Below are positions 9,739-42,348 of a stretch of 64,000 nucleotides of DNA, piece by piece. The translations under genes and the position numbers were made by a program. How positions within the stretch are numbered: the stretch's first letter is position 1; each line of letters begins with the position of its first letter. The notes under the pieces are model-generated. The model did no database searches and was not told the DNA's origin. It was given only the letters and a program-made list of their open reading frames with translations. The stretch lies in sequence record NC_062581.1, one strand, 5' to 3'.

Positions 9739-9747
9739 CTATATTAC
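9739..9747 (+). promoter_or_regulatory. phiKZ-type early promoter (TATATTAC)
   Basis: CTATATTAC just downstream of a terminator, AT-rich upstream; matches the published phiKZ early consensus. Confidence 0.75.
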
Positions 9748-12700: not shown

Positions 12701-15678
12701 GATTTTGTAGCTACTCTCTTGCTCGAACATCACAGGCCAAAGTAGCATGCAGACGGAAAGAAATAAAGAATTAACCAAGCACATGATCAGTGCGGTCATT
12801 GATAAGTATCTGGAATATGGTTACTTAACTTGGTCACTGACAAAGGCTCGCACAAATGATCCGTTATACACCATGCACCATCATGGTTATGTAGAGTATC
12901 TACGAGTCGAAGCAAAAGAAGAGGGGTTTACTTTCCATCGAACTGGGGTAGGGCACCCAGATAAAAATTACACGGTGGTAGTTAAACTTAATCCACAGTT
13001 TGAAGTTGTTGAGGTGGAAATAGAAACCTCATACTTCACCCACTTAGAAATTGCAATTGATCTACATCATGTTATTTCTGAAGTAATGGACCAATATCAC
13101 GCAGATGGTTCCCTTCGTGAACCACAAGCAAAAAACATTTCTGATTGCATTTGCAATCGACAGGGGAAGTAAGTAATGAATGCAGTTGGCGTAGCTAAAC
13201 GTTTGGGTATGGGCATGTTGGAAGTGCTAGTAAAAGACTTCATTGCCAGCGGATACATTGCACTGTTTAATGACGGTTGCACCAGTCGCTCTTTCCGTTA
13301 TTCCACTACCGGTCGTATTTATATCAAATACGCTGTGGAAGGGAAGACTGAAAAAGTACACTTCACCGTACAGAACCTTACGTCATTGCGTGAGGAAACT
13401 GTGGTATACACACTGCCGAAGCGCAGTGATGGTACTGTTGAAGTATTGCATGATATTACCAAACCGTACACGTTGGATTTTGTTTGGCTCACTACCGAAC
13501 TGGCTAAAGCCATGATTGTATTGCACAATCAAATCACCATTACTGGTGAACGCCAAGAACGTATCGAAGGGGGTAAAGGTTATTCGGTTATTGCTGCCGA
13601 TAACGTTGCCGAACAATTTACACGTATGCGCAACAATGGTACACCTGGAGTAGCTAACTAATGTGGGCTTACATTTCACCCATGATTGGTTATTTGATTC
13701 CTCTACTCATCTCGGCGGTTTGGTTAACATACCGTACTTTTGTAGTGGGTATGGATTCAGTCCGTTACTCACGCAATTATAACCCACGTATTCATAAAAG
13801 AGAATATGTTCAGAAGTGTCAGGAAAAATTCCAATACTTCAGTTTTCTTTGTATGGGTGCGGTACTTATGTGGATAGCGTTTATTACTATCCTGTTCGTT
13901 TCTGTATTTGGGATAGCGCATGGAACATCTGGAATCTAGTTGCATTAAAATGCTGAATGACGTAATGACCGGCCACCAGCTGGTGCGTTACAAAATGATC
14001 ACTGAGCTTACGGCAGCCTGGCGATTAAACACACAGTGGCGAATGGATCATGCTGAAGGTGCGTCATCTTCAGCAATTGATAAATTCATCTGGAAGAACC
14101 ATCTCTGTTATTACCCGAACAAAAAGACTGATCGCACCATTCGTGGCTACTCGATTCGTGATACAGAAAACGGATGGATTATGTTTACGGATTCCGATCC
14201 AGATAAACCTATGCCCTTGAAAGACCACTTGCGTCAACTGGGGTTGCCTGCTGGAGCCATTCCGGATATTATCCGTTTGCCTTTAGAGCCGGATGGTTTT
14301 GTAACCCCCAAAGGTCGCACTTTTCAAGCAGATGCTTTTTATGTCTGGTTGTATGATCCAAAGAATTACTTTTGGAGTTAATCATGAAGCTTTTAAAGCT
14401 CATGTTGGCAGCGGGTATTGCCGTAGGTATGACCATGTGTCATCCGGTTATGGCGGTACCCAAACCAACCAATGTAATTGTAGTAGAGAACAAAACTTGT
14501 CAAACCGGGGATCGCTTCTTAGCTGAGGTTATTCGGTTAATACAAGAAGGTAGAGCAAACATTGAAATTGTTTCTTACCTGGATAAACTTACACCCAATC
14601 GCGAAAAGGACCCACAAGGTTATTTAGGTATTACGATAGTGAAATTAAACATCACCAATGTTCGTACATCTCTAAATAAAGCGTTCAGGGAGAACGCTAT
14701 TCGCAAAACCCAAATGGCTAACTGCACGGAAACAGTTGGTAAAAGTTTTACTTTATATTGAGGCACTGATATGGACCTGCAACTTATTCGCGAACTACGT
14801 GACACCTTTAAAGATCGTTACGTATCGGCTAACGATCTTTTTGTTAAGTCGTTGAACACAGTCGCAACTCCAGTCATGGGTAGTCCAAAAGCAGTTTTGT
14901 GGATTATTGTTGATAATGCTCGTGGTGAAGACATTGTTCGTCGTCATTACGAAGCAATGCTCAAGGAAGATGAAAAGATTACAGGCAAGGAACAATTGAT
15001 TGATCCTTACGGTGGTCCTTCTCAACTGGCTACCCGTCTGCGTCAACAAGGGTACCATATGGAGTTGACTGTACTGCCAGAGGACTTTGATAAAAAGACC
15101 AAGTACATCCAACTGAAGCACGCAGAAATGCTGGCAAAGCATTACGATGTTCAAGCCGTTTGTTATAACCTGGATAATCGAGTTATGCCAGATGAAGAGA
15201 CTTTGAAGATTGACGGGATCAATGAATGAAAAAGTTTGTTGCTGTGTTGCTGATGATGTTTTCAGTAATGACGTGGGCTAATAAAAAACCCGATGTCATC
15301 ATTGATTACAAAAACAAAGAAAAGATCGCAATCACCCCACATGTGTGTGAAGTGGTTGAAGGGCTGGTAGATGAAGTAGTTGTAAAGATGGAGAAAGGTG
15401 CTAGTGATGACACCCTTGTCCAACTGTTGGCAAATCTTTCTATTAAGGAAGTAGCTGACACATCAACTTATTTATCAGCTTACATGGTCGGTAGTGCAGT
15501 TCCTTATATCCGTACAATGTTGGATAACCCAACGGTATTGGTATTCATGCATAACCATCCGGATCGAACCAAAGCGGAATCAGTTGCGGCTACAATGCGA
15601 TTGAAATGCGATGTACAACACGGCACGCAATATGAAGCACCCCGTCGACTCTATCTGATTAAAGATAAGTCTATTTAA
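9782..15678 (+). other. Early operon of about 17 hypothetical genes
   Basis: ORFs 9782-10039, 10087-10335, 10341-10742, 10806-11012, 11057-11326 (TM), ~11307-11681, 11682-12329, 12326-12745, 12747-13172, 13176-13661, 13661-13939 (TM), 13920-14381, 14384-14761 and 15226-15678 (signal peptides), 14771-15229. Confidence 0.7.
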
Positions 15679-15682
15679 AGAT

Positions 15683-15720
15683 GGCCTCCCTTCGGGGAGG
15701 CTTCCCTTATTTCTTTTTTA
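15683..15720 (+). terminator. Intrinsic terminator
   Basis: GCCTCCC-TTCG-GGGAGGC followed by a T tract. Confidence 0.85.
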
Positions 15721-15740
15721 TGTTCCAAATAATCTCAGAT

Positions 15741-15749
15741 CTATATTAC
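15741..15749 (+). promoter_or_regulatory. phiKZ-type early promoter
   Basis: CTATATTAC after terminator. Confidence 0.75.
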
Positions 15750-15812
15750 TATCTTGATGTAGTCACCAAAAAGAATAATAACTCAGGAGTATCTGTTATA
15801 GGAGCAAAAGCA

Positions 15813-17670
15813 ATGGCTTTTACCAAATTAGCTATTGTTAGTGGAGAATGGCAACTTGATCCAGATCAGGTTTTTCGTCTCTATGTGCGCCCGACGCTTA
15901 CAATTTTAAATCGTGCCGGAGTTACGCACTATGTATCTGCATTCGCAACAACCGCAAGAAGAACAACTGATTCACTCGACACAACGTCGCACTCTTTCGT
16001 TTGCTCCGCCTCCGCTCCCAGTAGCGCGTTTGGGGGAACGAGCGGGTCAGACTACTCCGCGTCAAACAGCCAGTGGTTGGAACCGATAGTTCAATCACAT
16101 AACTTTCACATGCTTGGGGAATTGTCTCACGACAGTTCTCCGATTATGGCCGGTTTGCTGATACGCGATACTGTTACCTGGAAAGCATTAGACATGCAAT
16201 CTGGGTTGATCTGTATTGACGACACGGAAGCTACTAACCAATTCGATGAACAGCTCATCGAAATTCTTAAACGTTTTAAGGTGGGTTGATGTGTACTGAT
16301 ATTGCAATTACCCTGAGTCAAATCCCAACGCGGGATGACCTTTTCAAAGTGGGTATAGGTAAAACGGTTAACGAAATATTGGAGTACATTGTTAAAGAAT
16401 TCTCGGGTCCCACAGGTGAACCGGATTACTTTGCAAAAGCGCAAAACAATATGGATTATTGGAAATGGTACGTTGAACTACCTTTCTCAGTAAGTGAGTA
16501 TGCACAGCATGCCGTGCGAGATGCATTAACAGAAAAAGCTTTTGATCTGGTACATTTCAACGACTACGAATCTTTTGACTCCGGGTTTACCCGCATGTCA
16601 ATTACCGTAAACAAAAAGGGCTAAACTACATGTGTCATAGGTACGCTGATCCTGATGCTTACATTGCTGCTGAAACTGACCGAGTGGTTAACAGCGTAAT
16701 GAAAGAAGTCATGGTAAGACATGTTTTACCACTAAATGCCAAACCGGATCGTTTTCATCGTGATGGTGTTGTTTTTATAATGGATGTTACAGACGACATT
16801 CATTCCAATTCCGAAGCAGGAAAACGCATCACCAAAGAACTTATGAGTCTTGGTTTTATTCATGCGCGTTTCTACGATAACAAGAAAGAGCATTATCGCA
16901 CTATCTTGGAATACACATTGGCACCTCTGGCTTTGTTTGAAGAAGAACGCGCCAGTTATGAAAGAGAGATGGCCACTAGTGTTTGATTTAGCTAAGTGCG
17001 ATACATTTCACGAAGGCGATATCATTGTTTCTTTTAAGAAAGACGACAATGAAACTAAAGCTAAAATCATCGGTACGTTGAATGCTTTAGGGTTTCATCA
17101 ATGGGCTTATTCTCTACGTGGTGATTACGAACAGTATCTGTTTGTAGCTGATTACGAAAAGCGCAAACAAGACCATTTGAATAGTTGCATGAATTCACTT
17201 TCTCTTTTGCCGAGTGCTGTTAAGCAAAAGCTTTCGGAATTGGTAGTATGAATCCATACATTTGCGACATGCTTGATACATTGATTAGAAAGCGTCGTGA
17301 AGAGTTTTGGTGGTTAGCTGGCCCAACCACACCCTTGCCTGACGAACACATTGTCAGTCAACCTCACGGGCGCTTCTATGAATCAAGTTCACCGTTAGCC
17401 ACCGAACGGCGTGAGTTGTTACTCAGCAACAATAAAGAAAGTAACCTACTGAAGTTTGTATGGGACGATGTAGTAATTTTATACATTGGTTCCCTAACCG
17501 ATGAAGAACAAATTGTTTTCCATTGGATACGCGGAGACGCAGTAGATGAAGAAGAACCCCTATCCCGAGAGTCTCTCATTCGAAGAGATCCTAGCTTCAG
17601 TTGCTGGCGGGGCATTAGTCGTGACGACCAAGGAATTCGAAAAGAAATTTCCGGATTTGAAAACGACTGA
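15813..17670 (+). other. Block of 5 hypothetical early genes
   Basis: ORFs 15813-16289 (true start MAFTK after GGAG), 16286-16624, 16630-16986, 16979-17251 (GTG), 17248-17670. Confidence 0.7.
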
Positions 17671-17730: not shown

Positions 17731-18015
17731 ATGAGCAATGCAAATGCCAACATGTTGGCAATTCGTGGAAAGATGGTAGAAGATCTGGTTGAAATGAATC
17801 AGAACGTTCAAGAAGTCTTGGATAACAAAGACCTTGGGTTTACCATTGAGCAGTCGGTAGCAGTTAAAAAAGCAATAGAAGAAACGACCTATGAAACTTT
17901 GCGTGTAATTGATGCAAGAGCGCAAATCTTTCCATCAGGTCATAACTTAGGTGAGATGCCATTCTTTGATGAAGGTGAACTTACCATTGCTTATATAAAA
18001 GCCATTAACACTTGA
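17731..18015 (+). CDS. IN[ST]-tail family small protein
   Basis: Ends YIKAINT*. Confidence 0.75.
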   Translation: MSNANANMLAIRGKMVEDLVEMNQNVQEVLDNKDLGFTIEQSVAVKKAIEETTYETLRVIDARAQIFPSGHNLGEMPFFDEGELTIAYIKAINT

Positions 18016-18031
18016 CACTTAGGAAGCAGTA

Positions 18032-18316
18032 ATGGGGAATAGCGTAGTAGATAATAGTTTTACCCAAGAGCGCCTTGACGAAATGGCGCAATCGGTTACT
18101 GAAGCCAACGAAGCTAAGCAGATTGAAATTCTGGACAGTCTTGTAGGTATTCGCATTGAAGCGCAAGCAATGACATTGGAGCAAGGTGTCATTCATGCAA
18201 TCACTGAAACTGCACGTGTTTATGAAAATGCGTTCTGTTTAGAAGTAACTGCTAATGGGTGCGCCACTGAATTTATGGGCGCTGCAGATCGTTTTGTGGA
18301 AGAAATCAACTCGTGA
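18032..18316 (+). CDS. IN[ST]-tail family small protein
   Basis: Ends FVEEINS*. Confidence 0.75.
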   Translation: MGNSVVDNSFTQERLDEMAQSVTEANEAKQIEILDSLVGIRIEAQAMTLEQGVIHAITETARVYENAFCLEVTANGCATEFMGAADRFVEEINS

Positions 18317-18546
18317 GAAATGACATCAGCGATGCCTCAGTAGATCTAGTCACAGACCACTTGATGGAATGGACTGGTAATTTGGACAAGAATAGTGTTG
18401 CAGCAGTAATCGTAGGAGTTGAGAAAACCCTCGATGCTCTTGCGCTAGCTATGATTATCCCGCTGAACTTCAAAGAACGTCTTACGAGTGCAATGTCACG
18501 TCGGAGCACCAAGCCTGCTCCAATTCTTAGTCTTACCCAAGACTAA
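18313..18546 (+). CDS. Hypothetical protein, possible family member lacking the tail
   Basis: AVIVGVEKTLDAL helix resembles neighbours; ends LTQD*. Confidence 0.6.
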   Translation: MRNDISDASVDLVTDHLMEWTGNLDKNSVAAVIVGVEKTLDALALAMIIPLNFKERLTSAMSRRSTKPAPILSLTQD

Positions 18547-18619
18547 AGAAATACTCCACCATGCAATAACATACGTGACCAATCCGGTGCGTATTACTAA
18601 TTCAAAAAGGAACACAGCA

Positions 18620-18856
18620 ATGAACGAAGTAAACACAATCAGCGTAGATGAATCCCGCCTGCAACTGGTAAGCGTCATCAATGACGTCCGTGCCGATGCT
18701 GTTAAGCTGGACACTGCTGCTGCTGTTGACTACGCCATTCAAGGCACCCTGGCTGCTGCTGCAACTGCAATCACCGTTACTGGTGTTGATGCCCCAGTGC
18801 TGGAAGATTTCGCCAAACAAATCGCTGCTACCTGGGTTGAAACCGTCAACTCGTAA
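18620..18856 (+). CDS. IN[ST]-tail family small protein
   Basis: AGGA RBS, start MNEVN; ends WVETVNS*. Confidence 0.8.
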   Translation: MNEVNTISVDESRLQLVSVINDVRADAVKLDTAAAVDYAIQGTLAAAATAITVTGVDAPVLEDFAKQIAATWVETVNS

Positions 18857-18929
18857 TCCATTGCCGGTAACCATTGGTGGCTAAGACAAAATAAAAGCCA
18901 CCAATGGCCTTGCTCAAAGGTTAGTATAA

Positions 18930-19205
18930 ATGTCTGTTAGCCTAAAAGAATCTGGACTTCTTGATCAATTGATTTTTGATCGGGATGAGATTGTTTGCTG
19001 CACATTGAAAGATCTGGAAGATGACTACACCAAAGAAAAGGTGACGGCTGCTCTGGATGAAGTTTACAATCGCACAGTAGGTAATACTCTGGCGACGTTA
19101 AACAAGAATGGTTTTTATACAATCGCTGATGCCATTGCTGGTACTATTGGCGATGTGGTAAGCCAAGATTCCCATGACGAATGGATTAACGCAATTAACA
19201 CGTAA
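18930..19205 (+). CDS. IN[ST]-tail family small protein
   Basis: Ends WINAINT*. Confidence 0.75.
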   Translation: MSVSLKESGLLDQLIFDRDEIVCCTLKDLEDDYTKEKVTAALDEVYNRTVGNTLATLNKNGFYTIADAIAGTIGDVVSQDSHDEWINAINT

Positions 19206-19214
19206 GGAAAGTAG

Positions 19215-19559
19215 ATGTTCCCTGTATATTGGCAAGGTAGTGTCATTGGTGCAATCATTGGTTTGATTGTGTTGGCGGTATTCGCTTATTGGTTGATCCG
19301 TACCAAAGCTGAATCACTTGGTTTTCTTACCAAGCGCACCCGTTGGATCACAGTTGTTTTACTTCCCCTCATTTGGGTACTTTCGTTTGTTAACGTGGGT
19401 ATTCATCAGACTCAAGGCGATCGTGTTCGTTTTGATCAGGCCGGTCAATTGACCGAGAAGTCTACACCTGTTGTACGCTCCAGTGCTTCCCCTGAATCAG
19501 CACGTCAAGCTGCCGCTGAAACGCGGAAAGAAATTGACGCTGGTAACCTGAACAAGTAA
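19215..19559 (+). CDS. Membrane protein (2 TM)
   Basis: Two hydrophobic segments; directly upstream of the SPFH gene. Confidence 0.8.
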   Translation: MFPVYWQGSVIGAIIGLIVLAVFAYWLIRTKAESLGFLTKRTRWITVVLLPLIWVLSFVNVGIHQTQGDRVRFDQAGQLTEKSTPVVRSSASPESARQAAAETRKEIDAGNLNK

Positions 19560-19604
19560 TTCACCGCTACACCAAACAGAATTGAATTCAATAAGGAAAG
19601 ATGC

Positions 19605-20468
19605 ATGAAACTGTTGTCCATGATTAAAACTGCTGCACTTGCAATGGTTGCTGTAGTGGCTCTGCAAGGTTGCTCGTTTGAAGTTATTCCACCTGCCTTT
19701 AAAGGTAAGGTCCTGACTACTTCTGGTTACAATCCAGAAATCCTGGAGCCGGGTAAAGAAACCCTGTTTGGTCGTGACGAACTGGTTCTTCTGGAAACCG
19801 GTACCCGCACCGTAGCGGAAACCATTACCGTTAAAATGGAAGACAAACTGGACCTCACTTTTGATGTCCGCTTCCGTACTCGCATTGGCGGTAACGAGAA
19901 AGTCCTGAACGCAATGTTCAATGACATTCAAGTTCAAAACCGTATGGTTACTCTGCAACAAGTCTACGGCGTGTATGGCCTGGACGTAGTGCAATCAGTA
20001 GCTCGTTCCGTTGTAGGTAAGTACAAGACCGAAGACGTCGGTGCTAACTTTGATAACATCACCAAAGACCTGGCTGAACGTCTGACCAAAGCAATGGTGA
20101 ATTCGCCCCTGGAAGTATCAAACGTTACCTTGGGTAATCTGAAATATCCTGATGTTATTACCATTGCAATTGAAAAGCAATCGGAACGTCGTCTGGCTAT
20201 TGAAACAGAAACCAACCAGCAGGCAATTGAAACCACCAAGCGTACCAACATGTTGGCTTTGGCACAATTGGATCGCGATATCGAACTGACTCGCGCTAAA
20301 ACCCTGCGTGACTCTAACGCTATCACTGCTGATGGCCTGAGCCCAATGCTGCTTGCTTACAAAGCACTGGACGTTCAGCAAGATATGGCTAAGAACAATG
20401 CCGCTGTATTCGTGCCTTACGAGGCTATGGGTAGCAGCGGTTTGTCGAACCGCATCTTTAACAAGTAA
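19605..20468 (+). CDS. SPFH/band-7 (prohibitin-like) lipoprotein
   Basis: Lipobox LQGC; band-7 pattern (VIPPAFKGKVLT, V.LGNLKYPD.IT.AIEK); C-terminal coiled coil. Confidence 0.85.
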   Translation: MKLLSMIKTAALAMVAVVALQGCSFEVIPPAFKGKVLTTSGYNPEILEPGKETLFGRDELVLLETGTRTVAETITVKMEDKLDLTFDVRFRTRIGGNEKVLNAMFNDIQVQNRMVTLQQVYGVYGLDVVQSVARSVVGKYKTEDVGANFDNITKDLAERLTKAMVNSPLEVSNVTLGNLKYPDVITIAIEKQSERRLAIETETNQQAIETTKRTNMLALAQLDRDIELTRAKTLRDSNAITADGLSPMLLAYKALDVQQDMAKNNAAVFVPYEAMGSSGLSNRIFNK

Positions 20469-20519
20469 TGCCTGATCTGATCGAGATGTCCGATAGCTTG
20501 AAAAAAAGCTATCGGTATA

Positions 20520-20828
20520 TTGGCTGACCGTAGGCAGCAAGAAGAACATGACCGTGTAACTAATCGCAACCTTTTTATGGCGGTGGTGGTTGAAGGGTTA
20601 ATTGAAAAAGGTAACACTGGTACTTTCTTTGAAGATAATCCGGAAGCAGCAACTGCTCACCGAGTAGGTCTGCGGGAAGGTGCAGCTGTAGTTATGAAAA
20701 CAATTGATCGGTTAGACATGTCTGTCCATTCTACAGAAGACCATTGTATTAACCTTACCGTCGATGATGGTGATACTTATTGCAGTGTTAGTCTTGCAGA
20801 AGCCTTCGCGGCATCGATTAACTCGTAA
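20520..20828 (+). CDS. IN[ST]-tail family small protein
   Basis: GLREGAAVVMKTIDR helix; ends FAASINS*. Confidence 0.75.
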   Translation: MADRRQQEEHDRVTNRNLFMAVVVEGLIEKGNTGTFFEDNPEAATAHRVGLREGAAVVMKTIDRLDMSVHSTEDHCINLTVDDGDTYCSVSLAEAFAASINS

Positions 20829-20835
20829 ACAAACG

Positions 20836-20858
20836 GCCTCTCTTCGGAGAGGCTTTTT
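20836..20858 (+). terminator. Intrinsic terminator
   Basis: GCCTCTC-TTCG-GAGAGGC followed by TTTTT. Confidence 0.85.
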
Positions 20859-20884
20859 GATGTTTTCTTTTTTGTGGGGTTGTA

Positions 20885-22041
20885 ATGGTTACAGATCCAG
20901 ATAAATTTTTTGGTGGACTAGTTGAATACTTGGATGATAACTCAGCTGGTGAAGCGGGTACACTTACCCAGCTTATTGAAGGGTCACGATTGACCATTGG
21001 TTATTTTAGTCACTTTGCTAAAACCGGTGAATCATTGACTATGGAAAAAGCAGACGACATAAAAGAAGATGTAATGTTAAAAGCTTTTGAAAAACATGTT
21101 GATTTGCATTATGGTTGATTATCAAAGATTCTTTCATGATCTGATAATTGAACAATGTGGTCCGTCATATGCCCAAAACAATCCTACCGAGTTTCACCAA
21201 GGAATGGCATTTGGTATGGCTACAATTACTCCGACTGTCATTACACAAACATTACAAATAGCTAATGAACACGGCTTATTAAAAGAAGGCGTATATGAAG
21301 CTTGGCACGAGTATTATTACAATACTGTTTCTGAAGAGAACCCTAGTCTGGAAGATTTCCGAAAAGAATTAATACGGCGTCGATCTGAAGAAGATCTTGA
21401 TGCTTAACCGGTATTAAAAAACGCTGCTGCATTCTGTATGTATCAATACCCGGAACACTGTCATGAAACTCAAGCTTATAGAATTCATCTATGGTTACCG
21501 TGCCCCTTTGGGTATGGCTGTAATAGGTGGGTTTTACATTCTCTCTGTTAATATCGCTGGCCTTAACTAACAAGGATTACCGATGCATTCGTCCACCGCT
21601 TTGACTCTCGCTGCAATCGTTCTCGTTCTATTTCTAGCCTACCGCACATGGTCTAGTCTTATCCCGGCAGCAGCTGGTGGATTAAACGAATGGATCGATC
21701 AAGATTTTCCCGAAATCGTGCACACCCCTAAGCCTACATGGCTAACGGGGTTCCGTTACAAACGACATGGTATTGATGCTATTGCTAAACTAGATGTACC
21801 CATCTGTTTGGAATATGAACAATCAGGTAATCTAGGTCGGTTTTCTATTGTTGATTCGTTTGCGCGAGCTACGGTTGCTACTGACGGGAACGATCGTTCT
21901 CATAAGAAAGACCTAGTGGCTTACAATTGTGGTTTGGACCTGGTTCAATATACCGGTGGACAAATTGCAGTCAGTGTGGTTTACAACCGTATTTGCATTA
22001 CGGAAGTTGAACCAATTATTGAGGAATCTGCCTGTGAGTAG
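20885..22041 (+). other. Hypothetical genes
   Basis: ORFs 20885-21118, ~21111-21407, 21583-22041 (N-terminal TM). Confidence 0.65.
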
Positions 22042-22384
22042 AAAAGTACCCACCAAACAAGAACTTGAAGAAGCTTATGCTAAGGTAGCCGAAATTGAAG
22101 CTGAGTTAGTTCAAGAAGCAGCCGATGCTCGCATTCTGCTCTTTACCGAAATGCAATGTCAAGTTAATGATCGCGCTATTCCTACCTTTCGTAAAGGTGC
22201 AACCATGTCCCAAGCATTCCGTATGGGCATTGATGCCGGTATTGAAGTTGCTTTGGATAGCATGGATCGTCGAGGTATTACTTTGATTGATGGCGATGAT
22301 CGTTTACTAAACGTAGCTTTCGCACATGAAGGTCCTGATCTGTTGCCCATGAATGAATTGTGGGCATCTTACATTAATAGCTGA
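22034..22384 (+). CDS. IN[ST]-tail family small protein
   Basis: GTG start after GAGGA; GIDAGIEVALDSMDR helix; ends WASYINS*. Confidence 0.8.
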   Translation: MSRKVPTKQELEEAYAKVAEIEAELVQEAADARILLFTEMQCQVNDRAIPTFRKGATMSQAFRMGIDAGIEVALDSMDRRGITLIDGDDRLLNVAFAHEGPDLLPMNELWASYINS

Positions 22385-22391
22385 GGTAGTT

Positions 22392-22700
22392 ATGGGTCAA
22401 GGACTATCTGCAGCAAATGTAGTAACAGATGACATGTACTTAGCACAAGATGCTAAATGCAATCAGGAAAATTTCTTTGGTCTTTTAACGGATACATTGG
22501 CTGGCATTAAAGCCGTAGCTTCGGAGGATCAATTAGCTGGAATAATTTGTGGTGCACGGATGGTGTTAGGTGCCATTGAAGATTTGGACTTTGAGTTAAT
22601 AAATCGCAAAGATCAAACGCCATTGAATCCTAAACACGAATACATGGATTTTGATTTAGTAGTAGCTTGGGACAATTATGTTTCCGAGATAAACACCTGA
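22392..22700 (+). CDS. IN[ST]-tail family small protein
   Basis: GAGG RBS; GIICGARMVLGAIED helix; ends YVSEINT*. Confidence 0.8.
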   Translation: MGQGLSAANVVTDDMYLAQDAKCNQENFFGLLTDTLAGIKAVASEDQLAGIICGARMVLGAIEDLDFELINRKDQTPLNPKHEYMDFDLVVAWDNYVSEINT

Positions 22701-22707
22701 GGCAATA

Positions 22708-23076
22708 ATGAACGACCTAGCTGGCGCATTTGAAAGAAACAAACTTCGCAACTTCCAAGCTAGTTCTAAACTAGAAGGCATTGACTTGATAAAAGATATT
22801 GATCCAGCTGTCCTTCAGATTGCAGGTACTCAAATTTCTCAAGGTTTGTTTGTCCAACATATTGAAGATCGAATAAACAGCTTAGTTGAACTTGGCACTG
22901 GTGCAGGATCAATTGAATGTGTTCGAACCGGTGTACGGCTTGTATTGGACACCATCGATGAATGCAATATGTTATTGTTAGATGAAGCCAACGAACCGAT
23001 CAACCCACCTCATGAAACAGTCGATTTTAGTTTAGTGGCCTATTGGGATATCCATTGCGCTGACATTAATAGTTAA
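22708..23076 (+). CDS. IN[ST]-tail family protein with N-terminal YhfG/FicA-like motif
   Basis: N-terminal RNFQASSKLEG; ends WDIHCADINS*. Confidence 0.8.
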   Translation: MNDLAGAFERNKLRNFQASSKLEGIDLIKDIDPAVLQIAGTQISQGLFVQHIEDRINSLVELGTGAGSIECVRTGVRLVLDTIDECNMLLLDEANEPINPPHETVDFSLVAYWDIHCADINS

Positions 23077-23138
23077 GCCCTGTGTGATCTTATGTATCTA
23101 CGTTTGTAGATTCTGTCTGATCATAAAGGAGCCTACTA

Positions 23139-23699
23139 ATGGCAATTCTGAATAAGCAAGATGCAATCGCTGCACGCGTTGCTACTGACATCTCCCCTGT
23201 GGAAGCCGCAATCAATGATTACCTGACTTCTCAGCGTGTTATTGATTATCTCACCAACGTAGAAATTGCTAACCCATCTGTACGTGTAAACGTTGATGGT
23301 CAAGTACTGACTAAAGCTGCACTTGATGCAGTCAAAGCTTCGGTTGAAGCCGCTGGTTGGAAATCGGTTGAAGTCATCCAAGAAGCTAAGCGTGTAGTTG
23401 TTGCTTTCTCTGTTGAAGAGAAAATCGTTACTCCACCTGAGCCGGATGTATATGTTGCTACTGTAGCCCCTGGCTCAGCAAGCATCATTGTTGGTGCAAC
23501 TGCAAAGTTCACCGCAACTGTAACTAAAAATGGTCAAGCATACACTGCTACGCCTACCTTTAGTTCTGCTACCCCTGGCGTTGCCACTGTAGCTGCTGAT
23601 GGCACCGTAACTGGTGTTGCTGCTGGTACTTCGGTTATCACCATTGCAGAAGCTGGTAAGTACAGCAAGACTGTTACCGTCACTGTTACTGCTGCTTAA
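23139..23699 (+). CDS. Ig-like (Big_2) domain protein, probable virion decoration
   Basis: C-terminal ATVAPGSASIIVGATAKFTATV...FSSATPGVATVAADGTVTGVAAGTSVITIA. Confidence 0.8.
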   Translation: MAILNKQDAIAARVATDISPVEAAINDYLTSQRVIDYLTNVEIANPSVRVNVDGQVLTKAALDAVKASVEAAGWKSVEVIQEAKRVVVAFSVEEKIVTPPEPDVYVATVAPGSASIIVGATAKFTATVTKNGQAYTATPTFSSATPGVATVAADGTVTGVAAGTSVITIAEAGKYSKTVTVTVTAA

Positions 23700-23707
23700 G
23701 TCATATT

Positions 23708-23748
23708 GCCTCTCCCCTAAGGAGAGGCATTTATGCCTTTTCTTTTTA
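23708..23748 (+). terminator. Intrinsic terminator
   Basis: GCCTCTCC-CCTAA-GGAGAGGC followed by TTTATG and Ts. Confidence 0.8.
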
Positions 23749-23770
23749 TACATTTAAACAATTTAAAAGC

Positions 23771-23779
23771 CTATATTAC
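23771..23779 (+). promoter_or_regulatory. phiKZ-type early promoter
   Basis: CTATATTAC after terminator, TTTAAAA upstream. Confidence 0.75.
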
Positions 23780-23782
23780 TTA

Positions 23783-26700
23783 TTGGAATATACTCAATTA
23801 GGTTGTAGTCCCATGCCTAGAAAAGAACAGAAGTATTCTGCAAGTGCTGCTAACCTTAGCTGCTTTGCTAACTCGCTCTCAATCTCTGTTCGAGAGTTCC
23901 ATGTTTTCTTTGGTAAGGATTCTCCCCTGGCTGAATTATTTGCCAGTCATCCTGACCGAGACATTGTAAAGGTTGCTCTAGAAAAGCGCGACCTAACCTG
24001 GGTGTATCGAGTGATTTGGATTGATGCTAGTGAGGACTCTAGTCCTTATGATGTTGATGACCCTATTCGTTTCTTTACCGCTCAGCGCTTCAACCAGCTC
24101 ATCTTTGATACTTGTGAGATCAAGCATAACGCATCCATTAATTTCATGGGTGGTGTTGTGATTGATTACAAGCATTAAAAGATGGGTAAAAATCCAATTT
24201 ATTTTTCTTTTGTGTAGAAGTGGAGTTTTAACCGTGACTGGATATGTTATTGAAATCATGCGTGGGGAAGACCGCGTATACCTCTGCCAGGATCTGAAAA
24301 AGAAACCTCTTGTAGATCCTAAAGAAAGGAATGCTCTTGTGTTCCATTCGTTTGCTGACGGTAAGACTGCATTGAATGCTTTCTTGGCACTCAAACCCAA
24401 TTACGTTCGTCACCTCATTAAAGTGGATGACAAATACAAACGTCCCCTGCATGTGTTCCTTCGTCGTACCGGTGAAAAAGAAGGATTGTTTACCAGTGCT
24501 TCCATTTCCAAGATCTATGATTTTGTTGAGGTAGTTGCATGAACTGGGTTATTACCCGTTACAACGGAGAAGTATGGGAAGCCCCATACCAAATGCTACT
24601 CACTGAAGCACTGGTGCGCTTTATGAAAGACACCGGTTGCAGTGAGTGGGACATCAAACAAATCGTTAACACCCATTAAAAGGAAGTACGTTATGATCGA
24701 AATTAAAGTTAAGCCTCAACATGGTAAAGGTCCAGGTATCAACATCCATGGCAAACACGTAACCGAATCTGTGCATCAGATCTTTTCGCGTGTAATGGCT
24801 GCAAACCATATTCATAGTCCTTTTTATAAAGCACGGACTAAATGTTCTGCTTTCTTTCAAGGTGGGTATGATGCCCCTAAAGATAACTGGGTGTTCATTG
24901 AATTCTGGGGTTCCGATTATATGGACTTTGTTCAGATAATTCGGAAATATATTAATTACCTGGATAACGCAGGTAACCCACTTCCTATCACGTATAGTTT
25001 TCCCATTGAGCGCCGTTCAGAAGCAGAAGATATTCACCACTATGTTTTGCGTGGTAAATACTGCCATAACGAAGATGGTACCATCACCCTGTATCCAGAA
25101 GATGGTGACGATGTAATGGATTTGGTCGATTCTTTGGAGCGCAGCGGTTTTGTAATCAATTGCACCAAAATTGTAATTGACCCTTACGAATGGGAAGAAA
25201 AAGGTGCACTCGGTGTATTTGAAATGATCACCGAAGATACCTCAGTTCCATACATCTGGAAACTGGGGGACAAGTTGCGTTTCCTGCCGGTAAATGAAGA
25301 ACAGAAAACAGCAGTAGCAGATCTGCTTGGCTTGTTCAAGATTGCATACGTGTTCCAGAAGTTTGCAGATGAATAACGGATTAGCTTGGGAGCTGGAATG
25401 GATTGACCAGCATCCTGAGCATTATGAAGGGCCATTACATAGAGAAGCAGTGAAAAGAAATATTACAGCTCGCTATCTAATGAATCGGTTGATCCAAGGC
25501 GAAGTGTTTTATAAACCCGTTCCTGAAACACGTTACCAATACCTAGGGCTTTCTTTAGGTGCTGGATCACGACGGGAAGAACGATTGTTTGTCTACTGGA
25601 ATGCAGAAACTAATCAACTGCATCACAGAGATCGGGACGATTACAAAATGCGAATGGAGCGTTGTAAATGAACACTCTAGCAGACGGCGAGTATGACACT
25701 TGCCCAAAACATGGTCCTAAGCTATATATGCCTACGCGCCGTGTATTGGTTACGGACAATGTGGTTAGCCTAATCCATGATGAAGCAAACCCACCGGAAC
25801 CAAAACCTTTTGGCTGGCCTTACCGATTTTCGGTAAATTCCTTTTTTGCTGTTAACGTTATCTTTGATAAAGAAAAGAACAGGGTAGTACAATGACTAAG
25901 TGTGTAATTCATCTTGATGTTCCAATTCATGGCGAAGACATGAAGCGTACATATCTGCAAGAACATGATTCCTTGGGGTTTTCTGATCCCATATCTGCAA
26001 CAGAAATGTATCCACGTTTGATTGGTACATTAGATTCCAGGGTTTTGATTTTCCCTAACCCTAAAGCAGCAGCGGACTTCGCCGAAGTGTTTAGCCGCTG
26101 CGACGGCATGGCTACACCAGGTATGGCAGTTGGTTACCATGGTATTACTGAAAACGGTAATGCCTGCCCCCCTTTCCGCATTGTGCATCGCAATCCAGTT
26201 GTCCCAGGTCCAGATGCTGTAGCTAAAATTATGTCTGGTTGGGAAAAGCGCATTGAGGCTAAACGCCAAATGTTTCTTCCTGAACTACTCACTATGGCTG
26301 ATGTCACTGTTGGTCGTCAAGGGGAATTTAGCCATTCTGAAATGCTAGATGAGATTCGTTATCTTACCGACAACATGGTGGATGAAGAAATTGCTGCTGT
26401 GATGGATCGACTAAATCGTTTCAATCATGACAGCACGGTTATCACGGACATTGATACGTATCCTGAATCAGCAAACATTCATTACACCCGTACCACCGGT
26501 GATGGTTGGCAACAACACTTCAGTCTTACTATCTGCGCATTTAACTTGTGGGATGAAGCAGGTATCCGTCAACTTAACAATTTGGCACGGCGGCGCAGAC
26601 AGCATTATGGAACAAGGTAATCTACGTCAATACACGACTAGTCAAAAGTACCAGTTTTTTGAAATAGATAAGGATACCACAATAGACCATATCACGTTAG

Positions 26701-28718
26701 GTGAACGGTTTAGTTATGGTGACTTGTACATTGTACCCGAAACAGATTTGGAATGGCAAAATTGTCAGGATGCTGGTTTTGGGGGCTATGGCATATTTCA
26801 AGTACAGGTGTGTGTTAAAGAAGGATACTCATGGAAAAATGAATTTGTTTTTCGTGAAGCGCATGTGTTGATTGTGGGTGGTAGCATTCAATCCATTCAA
26901 CATAAAGCATTGACTTGGTTTGAAAATAACCGTGATTTGGTTAACAGTAAATACCCGCATCGGTACGGTCGTGAAATCACACCTATGTTGGTAACCCTTC
27001 GTTGTTTTGACCCTTACGTTCCTAAGGAAAAATAATGCTCGACATTAAGAATTACAATTCTCTCAAGAACACTAACAGCGGTACTGTTGTGGGTATTCTT
27101 CGTGGGTTTGGTTTTGTTGTCAACGATAACAAAGTTCTTGCATTGCAGGAATACAAAAATCGCCTTGAGGTATTGGCGATGAGTGTGCGTTTGCGTACTG
27201 CTGGCAAAACCAGCAATGCTGAACTTAAAGCACATATTGCAGCGTTACAAGAAGTGATCGATACCTTAGTTGATAAAGAAGGTACGTCGTATGCATACGT
27301 TGTTAAAACGCTGCGTCGTAAAATCAATCACATCAACTATATCTTTACCGATCTTCAAGAACTGGATAGTTTGGTAAAAGACTTTCAGTTGGTAAATCCT
27401 ATGGTGAGTCTGACTGTAGCCGGTGCCAACGCTTTGCATCAAGAAATGCATGGCCTGGACGGTTACATTGAAGATGTCATTCAAGAACTTAATGATAGTG
27501 TACTTGCAGTTAGTCCTAGTTAGGGCTAAAGGATATCAAAATGAGCGTTAAGCTAATCAAGCGTGGCAATGCATGGGTAACGGAATTCCTTGGCAAAGAG
27601 CGTCACTTTATTGTTGATTCAGACTTGGTCACTTGGCGCTCCCTTGGTGTTCTTACTGGGGCTGCTGTAGAGTTTAGTATTGACCTGGGTGGTTCATTGG
27701 AGCACGTGCGTAATCTCTTGACGGGGGAAGAACTTTCAGAGTTGGAAATCCCATCAGGTCACACCGTAGCAAGAATGATAAAAGCAACTAAGCTGTATGT
27801 TAACGGGGATTCACATGCCTGATGTAAGTGTTGTACATTTGTTGATTTTGTTTGGGGTGCTGCTATTAGTAGCATGGGGATTCTTGACGTGGATCTGTAA
27901 GCCCGTCATGGTAATTACCTTTGACAATGTTGAAATCACTACGCATTATGGTGCAGACCGCATTGTGGAGCGAACTGAGCTTGATTCTCCTTGTGGGGGT
28001 AAAAGTCTCAGTGCTGGCATGAACGACTTCTACATTACCATTACAGAGGGCATTGTCCGATACCATACTCCTGGGGAAGCAGCACTGTTGACCCCAATCT
28101 TACGTAGCTCTGAAGATATTCTTTTCTTCCGACTGCAAATTCGAGTAGTAGGTAAACGCATCACTCGTTTTGAGCCAACCAATTTGTCCAAACCTTTGGC
28201 CCGGTTAGCTTGGAGTAAAGTAGCGTAGTATCGTTAACGTTTCTAAGGAACGCAACATGTCAGAGAAATTGAATGCTGGGCAATTCCCGGTATTGCAACG
28301 TAACAATAACGCTAACCTGTTTGTGCAGCATCAGCAGTCCATGCCGCAACGCGTCACTCTACCTAACGGGGATCTGGCTGAAACGGGTTATGTAAAAGTA
28401 ACAGGTTCCGAATCTATTGATCTGTACGCGTTGTGTCAGAACAATGGTAACAGTAAGACTTTGTCAGTAAAAGCTATTGCCTATGTTGATGAAGGTGATA
28501 ACTTGCAAGTTCATCCTATCGCTCGGATGAAACCGTCAGAACTAAAAGATCCGGCATATACCGCTAAAGGTAAAACCCTTATTGAAATTGGACATGTGAC
28601 TAAGTTGGTTGGATTGCGTTGGGGCTTTAATCTCAAGCTTGATCCTAAAACTGGTTACTGCACAATCAGCGTAGATCGGGAATCCCCGATTGTCGGTTTG
28701 AAATTACAGTTTGATTAA
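23783..28718 (+). other. Early operon of about 11 hypothetical genes
   Basis: ORFs ~23783-24178, ~24208-24542, 24693-25376, 25369-25671 (DUF1653-like C-terminus), 25668-25895, 25892-26620, ~26607-27035, 27035-27523, 27541-27822, ~27815-28228, 28257-28718. Confidence 0.7.
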
Positions 28719-28721
28719 ACA

Positions 28722-28745
28722 GAGTCCCTTCGGGGACTCGTTTAT
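28722..28745 (+). terminator. Intrinsic terminator
   Basis: GAGTCCC-TTCG-GGGACTC followed by TTTATG. Confidence 0.8.
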
Positions 28746-28764
28746 GTTCCAAAAAATCACAGCT

Positions 28765-28773
28765 CTATATCAC
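28765..28773 (+). promoter_or_regulatory. Early promoter variant
   Basis: CTATATCAC after terminator. Confidence 0.6.
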
Positions 28774-28819
28774 TTAGAAGTATAGACTGCCTGCTATACA
28801 CAACAAGGGGATTTAAAAA

Positions 28820-29104
28820 ATGTTTAGTAAACTTATCGGTTTGGCTGTACATGGCATTGCTGCTTCTAAAGTAGAGCCAGGAATGATTCTTACAGCGGCA
28901 CGCGATATTTTTCAGACTATCATTGATCGCAATGGTAATCATCACGAAATTGCTTATGCTAACGAAGGTGACCAAATCCGTGTTGAACACTCTGATGACG
29001 TACGTCCGGGTGAACTGTTTGTATGTACTAACATCGATAACTTTGAAGAAGTTGCTTCGGTAAACCCACATGACCTTGATGATGTTTTGAAGGAATACAC
29101 TTAA
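28820..29104 (+). CDS. Small protein with SH3-like beta-barrel C-terminal half
   Basis: IAYANEGDQIRV motif shared with three other small ORFs. Confidence 0.7.
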   Translation: MFSKLIGLAVHGIAASKVEPGMILTAARDIFQTIIDRNGNHHEIAYANEGDQIRVEHSDDVRPGELFVCTNIDNFEEVASVNPHDLDDVLKEYT

Positions 29105-29454
29105 TGCTTGATTTTGACAATCTAAAAGAATACATTGAACAAGTCTATCGTGTTCGCATGGATCAATCTTTCTTAGAAAAAGAAGCTCCTGCGTTAACGT
29201 ATTTGAAGCTTGTTCGTGTATTGAGTTTTCTGCGCATTCAGCCAGTTGGCATGACAGCAGAAGAAATTTTTGCTGATGCTGTTCGTGAAGAACGCAATTG
29301 GGGTGGCAACAGTCCATCGCCAGAAACCCGCACGGTATTGCTTTATCAATTGGCTGATCTTCACGAGATCATTGAACTCCTCATTCGCAAATCGGAAGTA
29401 AAGAAAAATGACTCTTTCAGCGCAGAGCTCTGGAGCAACGACATTAACAGCTAA
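29104..29454 (+). CDS. IN[ST]-tail protein (outlying member)
   Basis: Ends WSNDINS*. Confidence 0.75.
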   Translation: MLDFDNLKEYIEQVYRVRMDQSFLEKEAPALTYLKLVRVLSFLRIQPVGMTAEEIFADAVREERNWGGNSPSPETRTVLLYQLADLHEIIELLIRKSEVKKNDSFSAELWSNDINS

Positions 29455-40791: not shown

Positions 40792-42348
40792 TTACTTTCC
40801 TACAGAACGCAACCAACGATCAATCAATTCATTGGTCTTAGCTTTGTATTTCAGGTATTTCAAAAACAGTTCTTCAGCACGTGGGTGCTCACGAACAATC
40901 ATGAAACCATGTGTTACACGCAGGTAATCTTCTGCACCAATAACAATGGATGGATCTTCCAGAGCAATAGCAATGTCTTCCAACCGATCAAGGTTTTGAA
41001 GAGCAGTCCATGCATCTTCCACATCAGCGTAGATTGTTTTTGGGATAGCGCTTTGGCTGATGTGGTACAGTGTAAAAGGACCTTCGTGTTTAGTAACTAC
41101 AATTGCTTCACCGTCACCAAAACGATCCAACCAACGTTCGTTGTTAATAGCCAGGTCAGTGTAGTACTTAGCTACGGATGGCATGGTTTCTTCTAGCAAC
41201 GCTTGTAGACCATCATTAAGATGCTGAAAAATACGGAAACCATTACTAACAAATGATTCTGGATTAAATTCAGGATCGGTAGTGTCAACGTAAAGCAATG
41301 CCAGTTGCTTACCTTCCGGCAGATCACGTTCAAATAGGTACGCATGCTTACGTGATTCAGGATCAGCCAGATTATGCTTAGCAATAGACATTGCCAGTTG
41401 TGGTGCTTGTTCCTGAATTGCTTCTCTGACGAGATCTACGGTAGTTTCCGGATCAGGATCGGCGGGATCAATTGTGAGTTCGACGTCTTTTGGAAAATCT
41501 TCCTGATATCGTTTTACAATATCCTCGGTCACTAGGTAATTAAGTTTAGCTTTAATTACAATATCCGCATCTGGATATTTTCTTTTGAAGTGATCTACAA
41601 TCAGTTCTGGGTTAGTTTCGTCTTTATCCAGTTCTAGTTTCAGAGTCACTTTGCGAGGTGGAACATACAGTTCAGCAGTAGCAATACCTTCTTGCGAACC
41701 AACATCATCAAATGGATCACAGTCAGGATCTTCACCGTATTCCGGTTCATCTCCACTGTCGTATTCTTGCTCATCAGTGTCCGTATCCACCGCTTCATCT
41801 GGATCACCCAGTGGGCGATGACGATCGGTGTGCCATCGAGATTCTACACCAGTGATAACAATCTTACTACCAGCTGGAGGTAATGACAATCCACGTTCTT
41901 CGTGGGTCAATGTAGTGTCGGCAATATTAAGTGCAGTATCGTAACCACCACCAACCAAAAACAAAGGCAAGCGACGCGCCAGTGCTTCAGCGCCAGAATT
42001 TGCCTGGAAACCAGTTACGGTAATATGCAAGGTGTTTTCTTCCACACCTACAATATCACCGGCTTTATCAACTACAAAATCAGCTGTAGTTTTTTCTTCT
42101 GGTTTAATTACATCAGCATATTCGCTTTGCTTAGTAATGTCGTATTTGAACAGATGCGACATCAGTCGAGCAGCGGCAATGTTAGCTTGTTGACGTGTAA
42201 TACCAGTAGCATCCATGATAGGCATGGCCAGGTTACATTGCCAACCCCACGCGTAACCTTCATCATCACGAATCGCAGCTTTAAGGCGATCAAATGCTTC
42301 ACCTGTGGTAATAGTGTATTCTACAGCTTTTGTAATTTCGGTGCTCAT
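40792..42348 (-). CDS. Hypothetical multidomain protein with acidic linker
   Basis: 518 aa; D/E-rich central segment; N-terminal GYAWGWQCNLAM. Confidence 0.8.
   Translation of the reverse strand: MSTEITKAVEYTITTGEAFDRLKAAIRDDEGYAWGWQCNLAMPIMDATGITRQQANIAAARLMSHLFKYDITKQSEYADVIKPEEKTTADFVVDKAGDIVGVEENTLHITVTGFQANSGAEALARRLPLFLVGGGYDTALNIADTTLTHEERGLSLPPAGSKIVITGVESRWHTDRHRPLGDPDEAVDTDTDEQEYDSGDEPEYGEDPDCDPFDDVGSQEGIATAELYVPPRKVTLKLELDKDETNPELIVDHFKRKYPDADIVIKAKLNYLVTEDIVKRYQEDFPKDVELTIDPADPDPETTVDLVREAIQEQAPQLAMSIAKHNLADPESRKHAYLFERDLPEGKQLALLYVDTTDPEFNPESFVSNGFRIFQHLNDGLQALLEETMPSVAKYYTDLAINNERWLDRFGDGEAIVVTKHEGPFTLYHISQSAIPKTIYADVEDAWTALQNLDRLEDIAIALEDPSIVIGAEDYLRVTHGFMIVREHPRAEELFLKYLKYKAKTNELIDRWLRSVGK

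Follow-up and report, generated by a model that had tools for sequence, protein, structure and literature searches.

We analysed the last 64 kb of the genome of Pseudomonas phage Psa21 (NC_062581.1, 305,260 bp), a stretch of 64,000 nucleotides referred to below as the window (window position = record position minus 241,260), and found that nine of its genes, all on the + strand and all within 12 kb of each other, encode small proteins that are mostly dissimilar to one another and end with a common seven-residue C-terminal tail (Table 1). Psa21 belongs to the genus Tepukevirus (family Chimalliviridae), has Pseudomonas syringae pv. actinidiae as its isolation host and counts among the nucleus-forming jumbo phages. 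The genomes of these phages hold hundreds of small genes whose function is unknown, and to our knowledge no linear signal that organises the products of such genes has been described in them. Every one of the nine genes is labelled 'hypothetical protein' in RefSeq. An earlier note on this DNA had quoted nine C-termini of this kind; all are present as quoted, and the sole difference in coordinates concerns gp342, which is annotated from a GTG at 18575 and had been read from the in-frame ATG at 18620. The aromatic residue that the note placed at position -7 was likewise found in eight of the nine proteins, gp352 having His there.

Table 1. The nine tail genes of the window and the promoter and terminator elements around them
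Feature	Position	Strand	Description
Candidate early (virion RNA polymerase) promoter	15728-15755	+	Core TATATTAC at 15742-15749; upstream of the gp339-gp346 block
gp339	17731-18015	+	94 aa; ends YIKAINT; tail kept in orthologs of RVTF4, D6 and L021 (two copies in L021)
gp340	18032-18316	+	94 aa; ends FVEEINS; tail in 4/4 orthologs; body link to gp342 (hhalign 44-71%)
gp342	18575-18856	+	93 aa; annotated GTG start; ends WVETVNS; tail in 6/6 orthologs
gp343	18930-19205	+	91 aa; ends WINAINT; tail in 3/3 orthologs
gp346	20520-20828	+	102 aa; TTG start; ends FAASINS; intrinsic terminator directly 3'
Intrinsic terminator	20835-20854	+	After gp346
gp350	22034-22384	+	116 aa; ends WASYINS; tail in 22/22 family members
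gp351	22392-22700	+	102 aa; ends YVSEINT; gp352 paralog (BLAST E 1.6e-10); tail kept in orthologs
gp352	22708-23076	+	122 aa; ends HCADINS; L018 ortholog tail-bearing; N-terminus matches Pfam YhfG
Intrinsic terminator	28722-28739	+	Before the candidate gp366/gp367 promoter
Candidate early promoter core	28766-28773	+	One-base variant TATATCAC; just upstream of gp366/gp367
gp367	29104-29454	+	116 aa; ends WSNDINS; tail in 29/29 family members; different predicted fold

The tail is written in varied codons, with ATT, ATC or ATA for Ile, GTC for Val, AAC or AAT for Asn, TCG, AGC or AGT for Ser and ACT, ACG or ACC for Thr, and it is followed by either TGA or TAA; the DNA 3' of the stop codons shows no likeness between the genes. 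The conservation therefore lies at the protein level, as the earlier note had argued, and the diversity of codons and flanks rules out a DNA repeat or an RNA signal. A nucleic-acid or translational signal in the last codons, acting in termination or re-initiation, could draw on the TGAGG that follows the tail at the gp350/gp351 and gp351/gp352 junctions and is a possible ribosome-binding site for the next gene. The synonymous codons, the use of both Ser codon families and both stops, and the heterogeneous downstream sequence and spacing speak against such a signal, which is effectively refuted by the codon data.

We then compared the number of tails with chance. Among open reading frames (ORFs) of at least 80 aa in the window, an [IV]N[ST] end occurs in 9 of 120 on the + strand and in 0 of 76 on the - strand. 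Over the whole genome, [IV]N[ST] has a frequency of 0.0013 at internal positions, giving 0.56 expected ends among 428 genes against 11 observed (Poisson P = 2.5e-11), and the seven-residue pattern with an aromatic residue at -7 was observed 8 times against 0.10 expected (P = 1.8e-13). When only the five independent body groups are counted, the [IV]N[ST] enrichment has P = 3e-4. The 11 annotated genes with such ends (12 ORFs) comprise the nine within 12 kb and two distant ones outside the window, gp251 and gp276, neither of which has an aromatic residue at -7. Membership of both is doubtful: the end of gp251 is kept in its orthologs, but so is the whole protein (71-84% identical), and gp276 has no relatives in IMG/VR.

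Selection on the tail is stronger than on the bodies

Relatives of the nine proteins were taken from phages RVTF4 and D6, from IMG/VR contigs of 305-315 kb and from Logan contigs. We found that the [IV]N[ST] tail is kept in all 36 detectable orthologs, from seven related genomes, of proteins whose bodies are 25-76% identical. Similarly, the families of gp350 and gp367 in protein collections (22 and 29 members, respectively, from jumbo-phage-sized contigs or metagenomes, none with a Pfam domain) carry the tail throughout, no member continues past N-[ST], and in the gp367 family a linker of variable length precedes the tail. An exhaustive HMMER search of 1.84 billion representatives with a gp346/350/351/352 profile matched 18 proteins, 17 of which are 81-161 aa long, align to their final residue and end with the tail; the remaining match, a short internal alignment in a 1118-aa protein, was disregarded. 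It was solely by this search that relatives of gp346 were detected, and all of them bear the tail.

As a control, we used 41 tail-less neighbouring genes, in which the last tripeptide was identical in 40 of 237 ortholog pairs (17%) and the ends were often unequal in length. Of 37 ortholog pairs of tail genes, 23 had an identical last tripeptide and all 37 retained the motif class (Fisher P = 3e-8), despite a lower overall identity (46% vs 51%). The tail is under stronger selection than either the bodies or ordinary C-termini.

A position profile was then made from 91 distinct proteins. Position -7 holds an aromatic residue in 97% (W 52%, Y 25%, F 20%) and His in 3%; -6 is A in 56%, V in 15% and I in 11%; -3 is I in 77%, V in 21% and L in 2%; -2 is N in 100%; and -1 is S in 80% and T in 20%. 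The last 12 residues have a mean net charge of -1.45, and the chain ends exactly after N-[ST] in all 91 proteins.

Bodies, predicted folds and relatives in other genera

Among the nine proteins, BLAST detected a single relation, that between gp351 and gp352. We therefore list the hhalign probabilities obtained with profiles built from the orthologs, both complete and trimmed of the last eight residues. The link of gp350 to gp351/352 scored 94% (89% trimmed), that of gp346 to gp350 89% (50% trimmed), that of gp346 to gp351/352 60% (36% trimmed) and that of gp340 to gp342 44% (71% trimmed), while gp343 was linked to gp350 (60%) only with the tail included and gp339 had weak profile links. The body of gp367 showed no profile link to the other eight after trimming (at most 0.7%). 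The divergent paralogs suspected in the earlier note are thus supported for gp346/350/351/352, linked at 60-94%, and so is its view of gp367 as unrelated apart from the tail, given the trimmed score of at most 0.7%, a different predicted fold and a flexible tail.

The folds of gp350 and gp367 were modelled with AlphaFold2 on family alignments. The gp350 model (mean predicted confidence score, pLDDT, 91) is built of two long helices and a small hairpin and closes with a helix at residues 106-114, which bears W110 and I114 with a pLDDT of about 89-94. The gp367 model (pLDDT 86) is a five-helix bundle with pLDDT above 90, followed by 16 last residues, the tail included, at about 52. At least two predicted folds therefore carry the tail. 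Neither model matched a solved structure in Foldseek searches of the PDB (best E 0.6-1, TM about 0.3), PDB sequence profiles gave no match for the bodies, and Pfam, PHROG and NCBIfam gave nothing above threshold for eight of the nine proteins. When the gp350 model was compared with BFVD, its closest matches apart from itself were Psa21 proteins of 122, 94 and 102 aa (E 3e-3 to 0.3), lengths that agree with those of tail proteins.

Most members probably form a single, highly divergent superfamily, whose best-preserved part is the tail. In the models, gp367 appears as the same tail on a different body, although its last third may share a very distant origin with the others.

The ninth protein, gp352, matches Pfam YhfG (PF10832), a family of Fic-toxin antitoxins, over 20 residues (residues 8-27, within the N-terminus encoded at window 22708-22790; 25.3 bits against a gathering threshold of 22.6, E 1.4e-5); against the NCBIfam YhfG model it scored 15.8 with a cutoff of 77. 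The acidic residue at the Fic-inhibitory position is changed in the L018 ortholog, the segment differs again in P0059, and no Fic gene is annotated in the neighbourhood of gp352. As a weak lead from this sequence match, gp352 might be an inhibitor of a Fic-type enzyme.

These data bear on the possibility that the tail is an intrinsic structural element of one paralog superfamily, that is, a last helix with its cap, packing on its own body or forming a homo- or hetero-oligomer interface between family members, inherited by descent and with no separate reader. The tandem arrays of small genes of similar size, the profile links (gp346/350/351/352, gp340/342 and, more weakly, gp339/343), the lengths of the BFVD matches, the orthology across genera described below, which points to an old family, and the confidently modelled tail helix of gp350 all agree with this explanation. 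However, the ends of folds are usually the least conserved part, as in our control genes, and here the end alone is invariant; gp367 differs in its predicted fold, and its low-confidence tail is attached by a linker; the exact stop after N-[ST] in 91 of 91 proteins is not required by helix packing; and the paralogs of phage PhiPA3 have altered the same tail position together. We consider a purely structural role quite possible, though we lean away from it. The earlier note had named as a refutation of its view that all nine proteins share a single fold in which the tail is simply a buried helix. This was not what we found, the predicted fold of gp367 being different, but the description may still hold for the gp350 group, whose tail helix is modelled with confidence. 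Even if the tail were merely a structural cap, it would still delimit a large unrecognised paralog superfamily that includes phiKZ gp258.

We further studied other chimalliviruses by sampling 40-50 kb each of PS119XW, Phabio, PhiPA3 and phiKZ. In PS119XW (genus Pawinskivirus), where a well-conserved SPFH lipoprotein gene inside the tail cluster served as the anchor for finding the locus, four small genes around the SPFH gene end with V-N-[ST], a fifth lies farther upstream in the locus, and two more have Q or N as the final residue. Phabio (Phabiovirus) carries a contiguous array of seven small genes ending with V-N-[ST] or I-S-[NT] (at 13831-16938 of the sampled region). Four small proteins of PhiPA3 (array at 19341-23167 of the sampled region) end with [IV]-S-[NS] after two aromatic residues; they were first picked up by tail-trimmed body profiles and then by a broader scan of endings, as a pattern demanding Asn at the second-last position misses the Ser forms. 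Every PhiPA3 member (four or five) has Ser where the PS119XW and Phabio orthologs have Asn, so that the change is common to the paralogs of one genome.

Two families connect these loci by BLAST. The first consists of phiKZ gp258, PhiPA3 gp306, Phabio gp366 and PS119XW gp309 (E 1e-22 to 1e-48), mutual homologs that lie in a syntenic small-gene region and carry tail variants; of the tail, phiKZ gp258 retains both aromatic residues together with the Val and the Asn. The endings of this family differ by genus (N-S, S-S, or N plus two residues), and its link to the Psa21 members is by tail and synteny. The second family is PhiPA3 gp313, Phabio gp373 and PS119XW gp311 (E about 1e-15 to 1e-17), and the gp342 body of Psa21 has a weak link to its PS119XW and PhiPA3 members. 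Compared at the level of sequence, the cross-genus families and their variant endings identify the tail as the mark of an old superfamily of small genes that spans at least five chimallivirus genera and in which the last two residues are lineage-specific. A tail-less gp367-like body was not found in the sampled loci of other genera, and literature searches returned no description of the tail motif or of phiKZ gp258. A looser core pattern was noisy, with 3 matches on the opposite strand of PhiPA3, and was abandoned; phiKZ gp241 and gp242 are unproven candidates.

The SPFH gene belongs to a cassette embedded in the Psa21 tail cluster, gp344 and gp345 (19215-20468), which encodes a small membrane protein and an SPFH/Band-7 protein with a lipoprotein-type signal. 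Homologs were counted in 135 phage records, among them 88-kb PAK_P3-like phages, Vibrio phages and Erwinia phage RisingSun; in 3 of 3 cases inspected, the SPFH gene has the small membrane gene directly upstream. A linkage between the tail and the cassette was rejected: RisingSun and the 88-kb PAK_P3 carry the cassette without tail genes, and the sampled regions of Phabio and PhiPA3 carry tail genes with no annotated SPFH gene.

Expression context and reading of the tail

A k-mer enrichment in the upstream non-coding DNA of Psa21 returned the core TATATTAC, with 20 copies there against 4 in the whole of the coding sequence (about 95-fold). In the window, candidate promoter sites with this core lie on the + strand at 9740, 15742, 23772, 28766 (one-base variant) and 39428. 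The gp339-gp346 genes are bounded by the 15742 site and the terminator after gp346, and gp366 and gp367 are the first genes past the 28766 site; no promoter core was found between 20854 and gp350. The same core precedes the tail clusters of RVTF4, D6 and PS119XW, and in phiKZ it is found 51 nt ahead of the PHIKZ260 start codon. An early primary transcription start has been mapped for PHIKZ260, and typical 5' untranslated regions measure 31-40 nt (PMC8244752). Early promoters of jumbo phages have been described as AT-rich motifs of about 10 nt near -10 (PMC7598289). Sigma-70 promoters showed no enrichment, with 25 found against 30 expected. From these sequence features, the tail genes are probably expressed early by the virion RNA polymerase, a context that fits cytoplasmic takeover or accessory proteins. 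Moreover, PHIKZ258 was detected in infected cells according to the published phiKZ supplements, and transposon insertions, in unlabelled columns as read, numbered 8 and 28 sites in PHIKZ258 against 2 and 6 in PHIKZ260; the many insertions suggest that PHIKZ258 is a dispensable accessory gene.

Two gene pairs of the tail clusters appear to be translationally coupled. The stop of gp366 and the ATG start of gp367 (28820-29454) overlap by 1 nt, and gp349, which has an N-terminal membrane helix, overlaps gp350 by 8 nt (21583-22384). Both pairs are preserved in every relative examined.

The predicted early expression, the terminal position with its free carboxylate and the single fate it would offer to many unrelated bodies raise the possibility of a C-terminal degron, by which a host or phage protease would remove early proteins at a set time. 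Canonical PDZ ligands and the well-known bacterial C-terminal degrons of the non-polar type, a textbook class, have a hydrophobic last residue. The tails end polar, with Ser (80%) or Thr (20%) in the 91 proteins. We also considered a link to gp301 (record 238744-240108), annotated 'cell division protein FtsH', and rejected it: its domains are BCS1_N and AAA, with no protease domain, and this BCS1-like AAA ATPase is widespread in jumbo phages, in phages with tails as well as in phages in which none were seen. We regard a degron as very unlikely.

Sorting into a compartment, whether import into the phage nucleus, recruitment to an early infection vesicle or loading into the capsid, would also use a terminal peptide, and address peptides on unrelated cargo have precedents elsewhere; moreover, Psa21, being a chimallivirus, must sort its proteins (PMC11087766). 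However, none of the DNA polymerase, RNA polymerase, helicase, ligase or virion proteins annotated in Psa21 carries the tail, and the motif is limited to a single family of small accessory genes. A general nuclear-import signal is not supported because the annotated replication and transcription proteins lack it; import into the phage nucleus was one of several options in the earlier note. Another of these options, capsid loading, is disfavoured by the predicted early operons, and no tail gene is annotated as a virion protein. Altogether, we consider sorting quite unlikely.

We next compared the tail, by description, with known systems. The capsid-targeting peptide of T4 internal proteins is likewise a short terminal address on unrelated small phage proteins, but it is N-terminal, cleaved and borne by packaged proteins, whereas the Psa21 tail is C-terminal and encoded in predicted early operons. 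Encapsulin cargo-loading peptides are short C-terminal peptides that dock diverse cargo at one site of a shell resembling a phage capsid. Like these cargo peptides, the tail is shared by unrelated proteins. Cargo peptides would also lead one to expect late expression and presence in the virion; the tail genes lie 3' of predicted early promoters, and none is annotated as a virion protein. The peroxisomal targeting signal type 1 is a C-terminal tripeptide with a free carboxylate, read by one receptor that carries unrelated folded proteins into a compartment, but it is eukaryotic and of other residue chemistry, and the known nuclear proteins of Psa21 lack the tail. In the tip of single-stranded DNA-binding protein (SSB) and in sliding-clamp-binding peptides, an acidic or hydrophobic extreme C-terminus docks with its carboxylate in a pocket; SSB has one tail for many partners, and the clamp has many binders with a different motif. 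Within the same virus family, flexible N- and C-terminal segments of chimallin dock in pockets of neighbouring protomers (PMC9365700). The termini of Psa21 chimallin are unlike the tail, and mimicry of its C-terminal docking segments was rejected on that ground. Two further candidates were discarded: the clamp-like Rhc papers contain no tail motif, and the Avs5 activator is an unrelated 721-aa protein. The tail belongs to the terminal short linear motifs, and none of these parallels is a family in which the proteins can be placed.

We favour the reading, with a rough probability of 0.4, that the tail is a short docking motif for one common site, carried by old, fast-diverging early accessory proteins. 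The aromatic residue at -7 and the Ile or Val at -3 are one helical turn apart, and in the models a short helix ends just before the Asn. An acidic lead-in would thus be followed by two hydrophobic residues on one face of a short helix, the invariant Asn, and a Ser or Thr with a free carboxylate, and the hydrophobic pair, the Asn side chain and the chain end would fit one common pocket on a phage or host protein, while the variable bodies would provide differing activities. For gp367-type proteins the site would be bound in trans; in the gp350 group it might be bound in cis or between family members.

Several observations led us to this view. The polar last residue, the invariant Asn and the strict chain end argue that the terminus itself is recognised, rather than simply packed in a core. 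The gp367 tail, on a linker of variable length and with a pLDDT of about 52, looks like a linear motif and not like a core element. Moreover, the Asn-to-Ser change shared by the PhiPA3 paralogs would be expected if a single reader co-evolves with the tails.

Other points weigh against a common docking site. No known partner of the tail was found. The tail helix of gp350 (pLDDT about 89-94) may pack on its own body, as the model indicates, and many members are probably of one superfamily, so that descent from a common ancestor accounts for some of the sharing. In Phabio, N-S and S-N endings stand side by side within one genome. The chain of phiKZ gp258 ends two residues later than the Psa21-type tail, and a metagenomic relative of the PS119XW Q-ending variant (INQ) has five extra residues; beyond the Psa21 clade, then, the position of the free end is not strictly maintained.

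In a stronger form of the docking proposal, the tail would be an address tag read by a single phage or host receptor, which would bring a changing set of early effectors with unrelated folds together at a single site, such as the early infection vesicle or the nuclear shell as it forms, and the lineage-specific endings would record the co-evolution of tag and receptor. This form is unlikely, but if true it would give nucleus-forming phages their first described linear code for sorting or docking. For the docking motif in general, the tail delimits about 7-10 early accessory proteins per genome and predicts one common, searchable binding site, and the N-S and S-N endings offer a natural covariation series for locating that site by comparative genomics.

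Neighbouring features

Some further features of the window and its surroundings were recorded. Between gp342 and gp343 (window 18876-18911), two perfect 11-bp inverted repeat arms flank an A-rich loop of 14 nt; the repeat did not score as a + strand terminator. The sign of the GC skew and the coding strand switch at about 41000-42000: the first 41 kb or so carry + strand genes, and the remainder of the record carries mostly - strand genes. Relatives of BCS1 transport folded proteins across membranes, and the BCS1 likeness of gp301 may interest work on nucleus-forming phages. Finally, gp353 (23139-23699), a protein of 186 aa, is labelled 'major head protein' in RefSeq but its domain matches are only to bacterial Ig-like domains (Big_2, Big-like); the label looks wrong, and the real major head protein is gp170.

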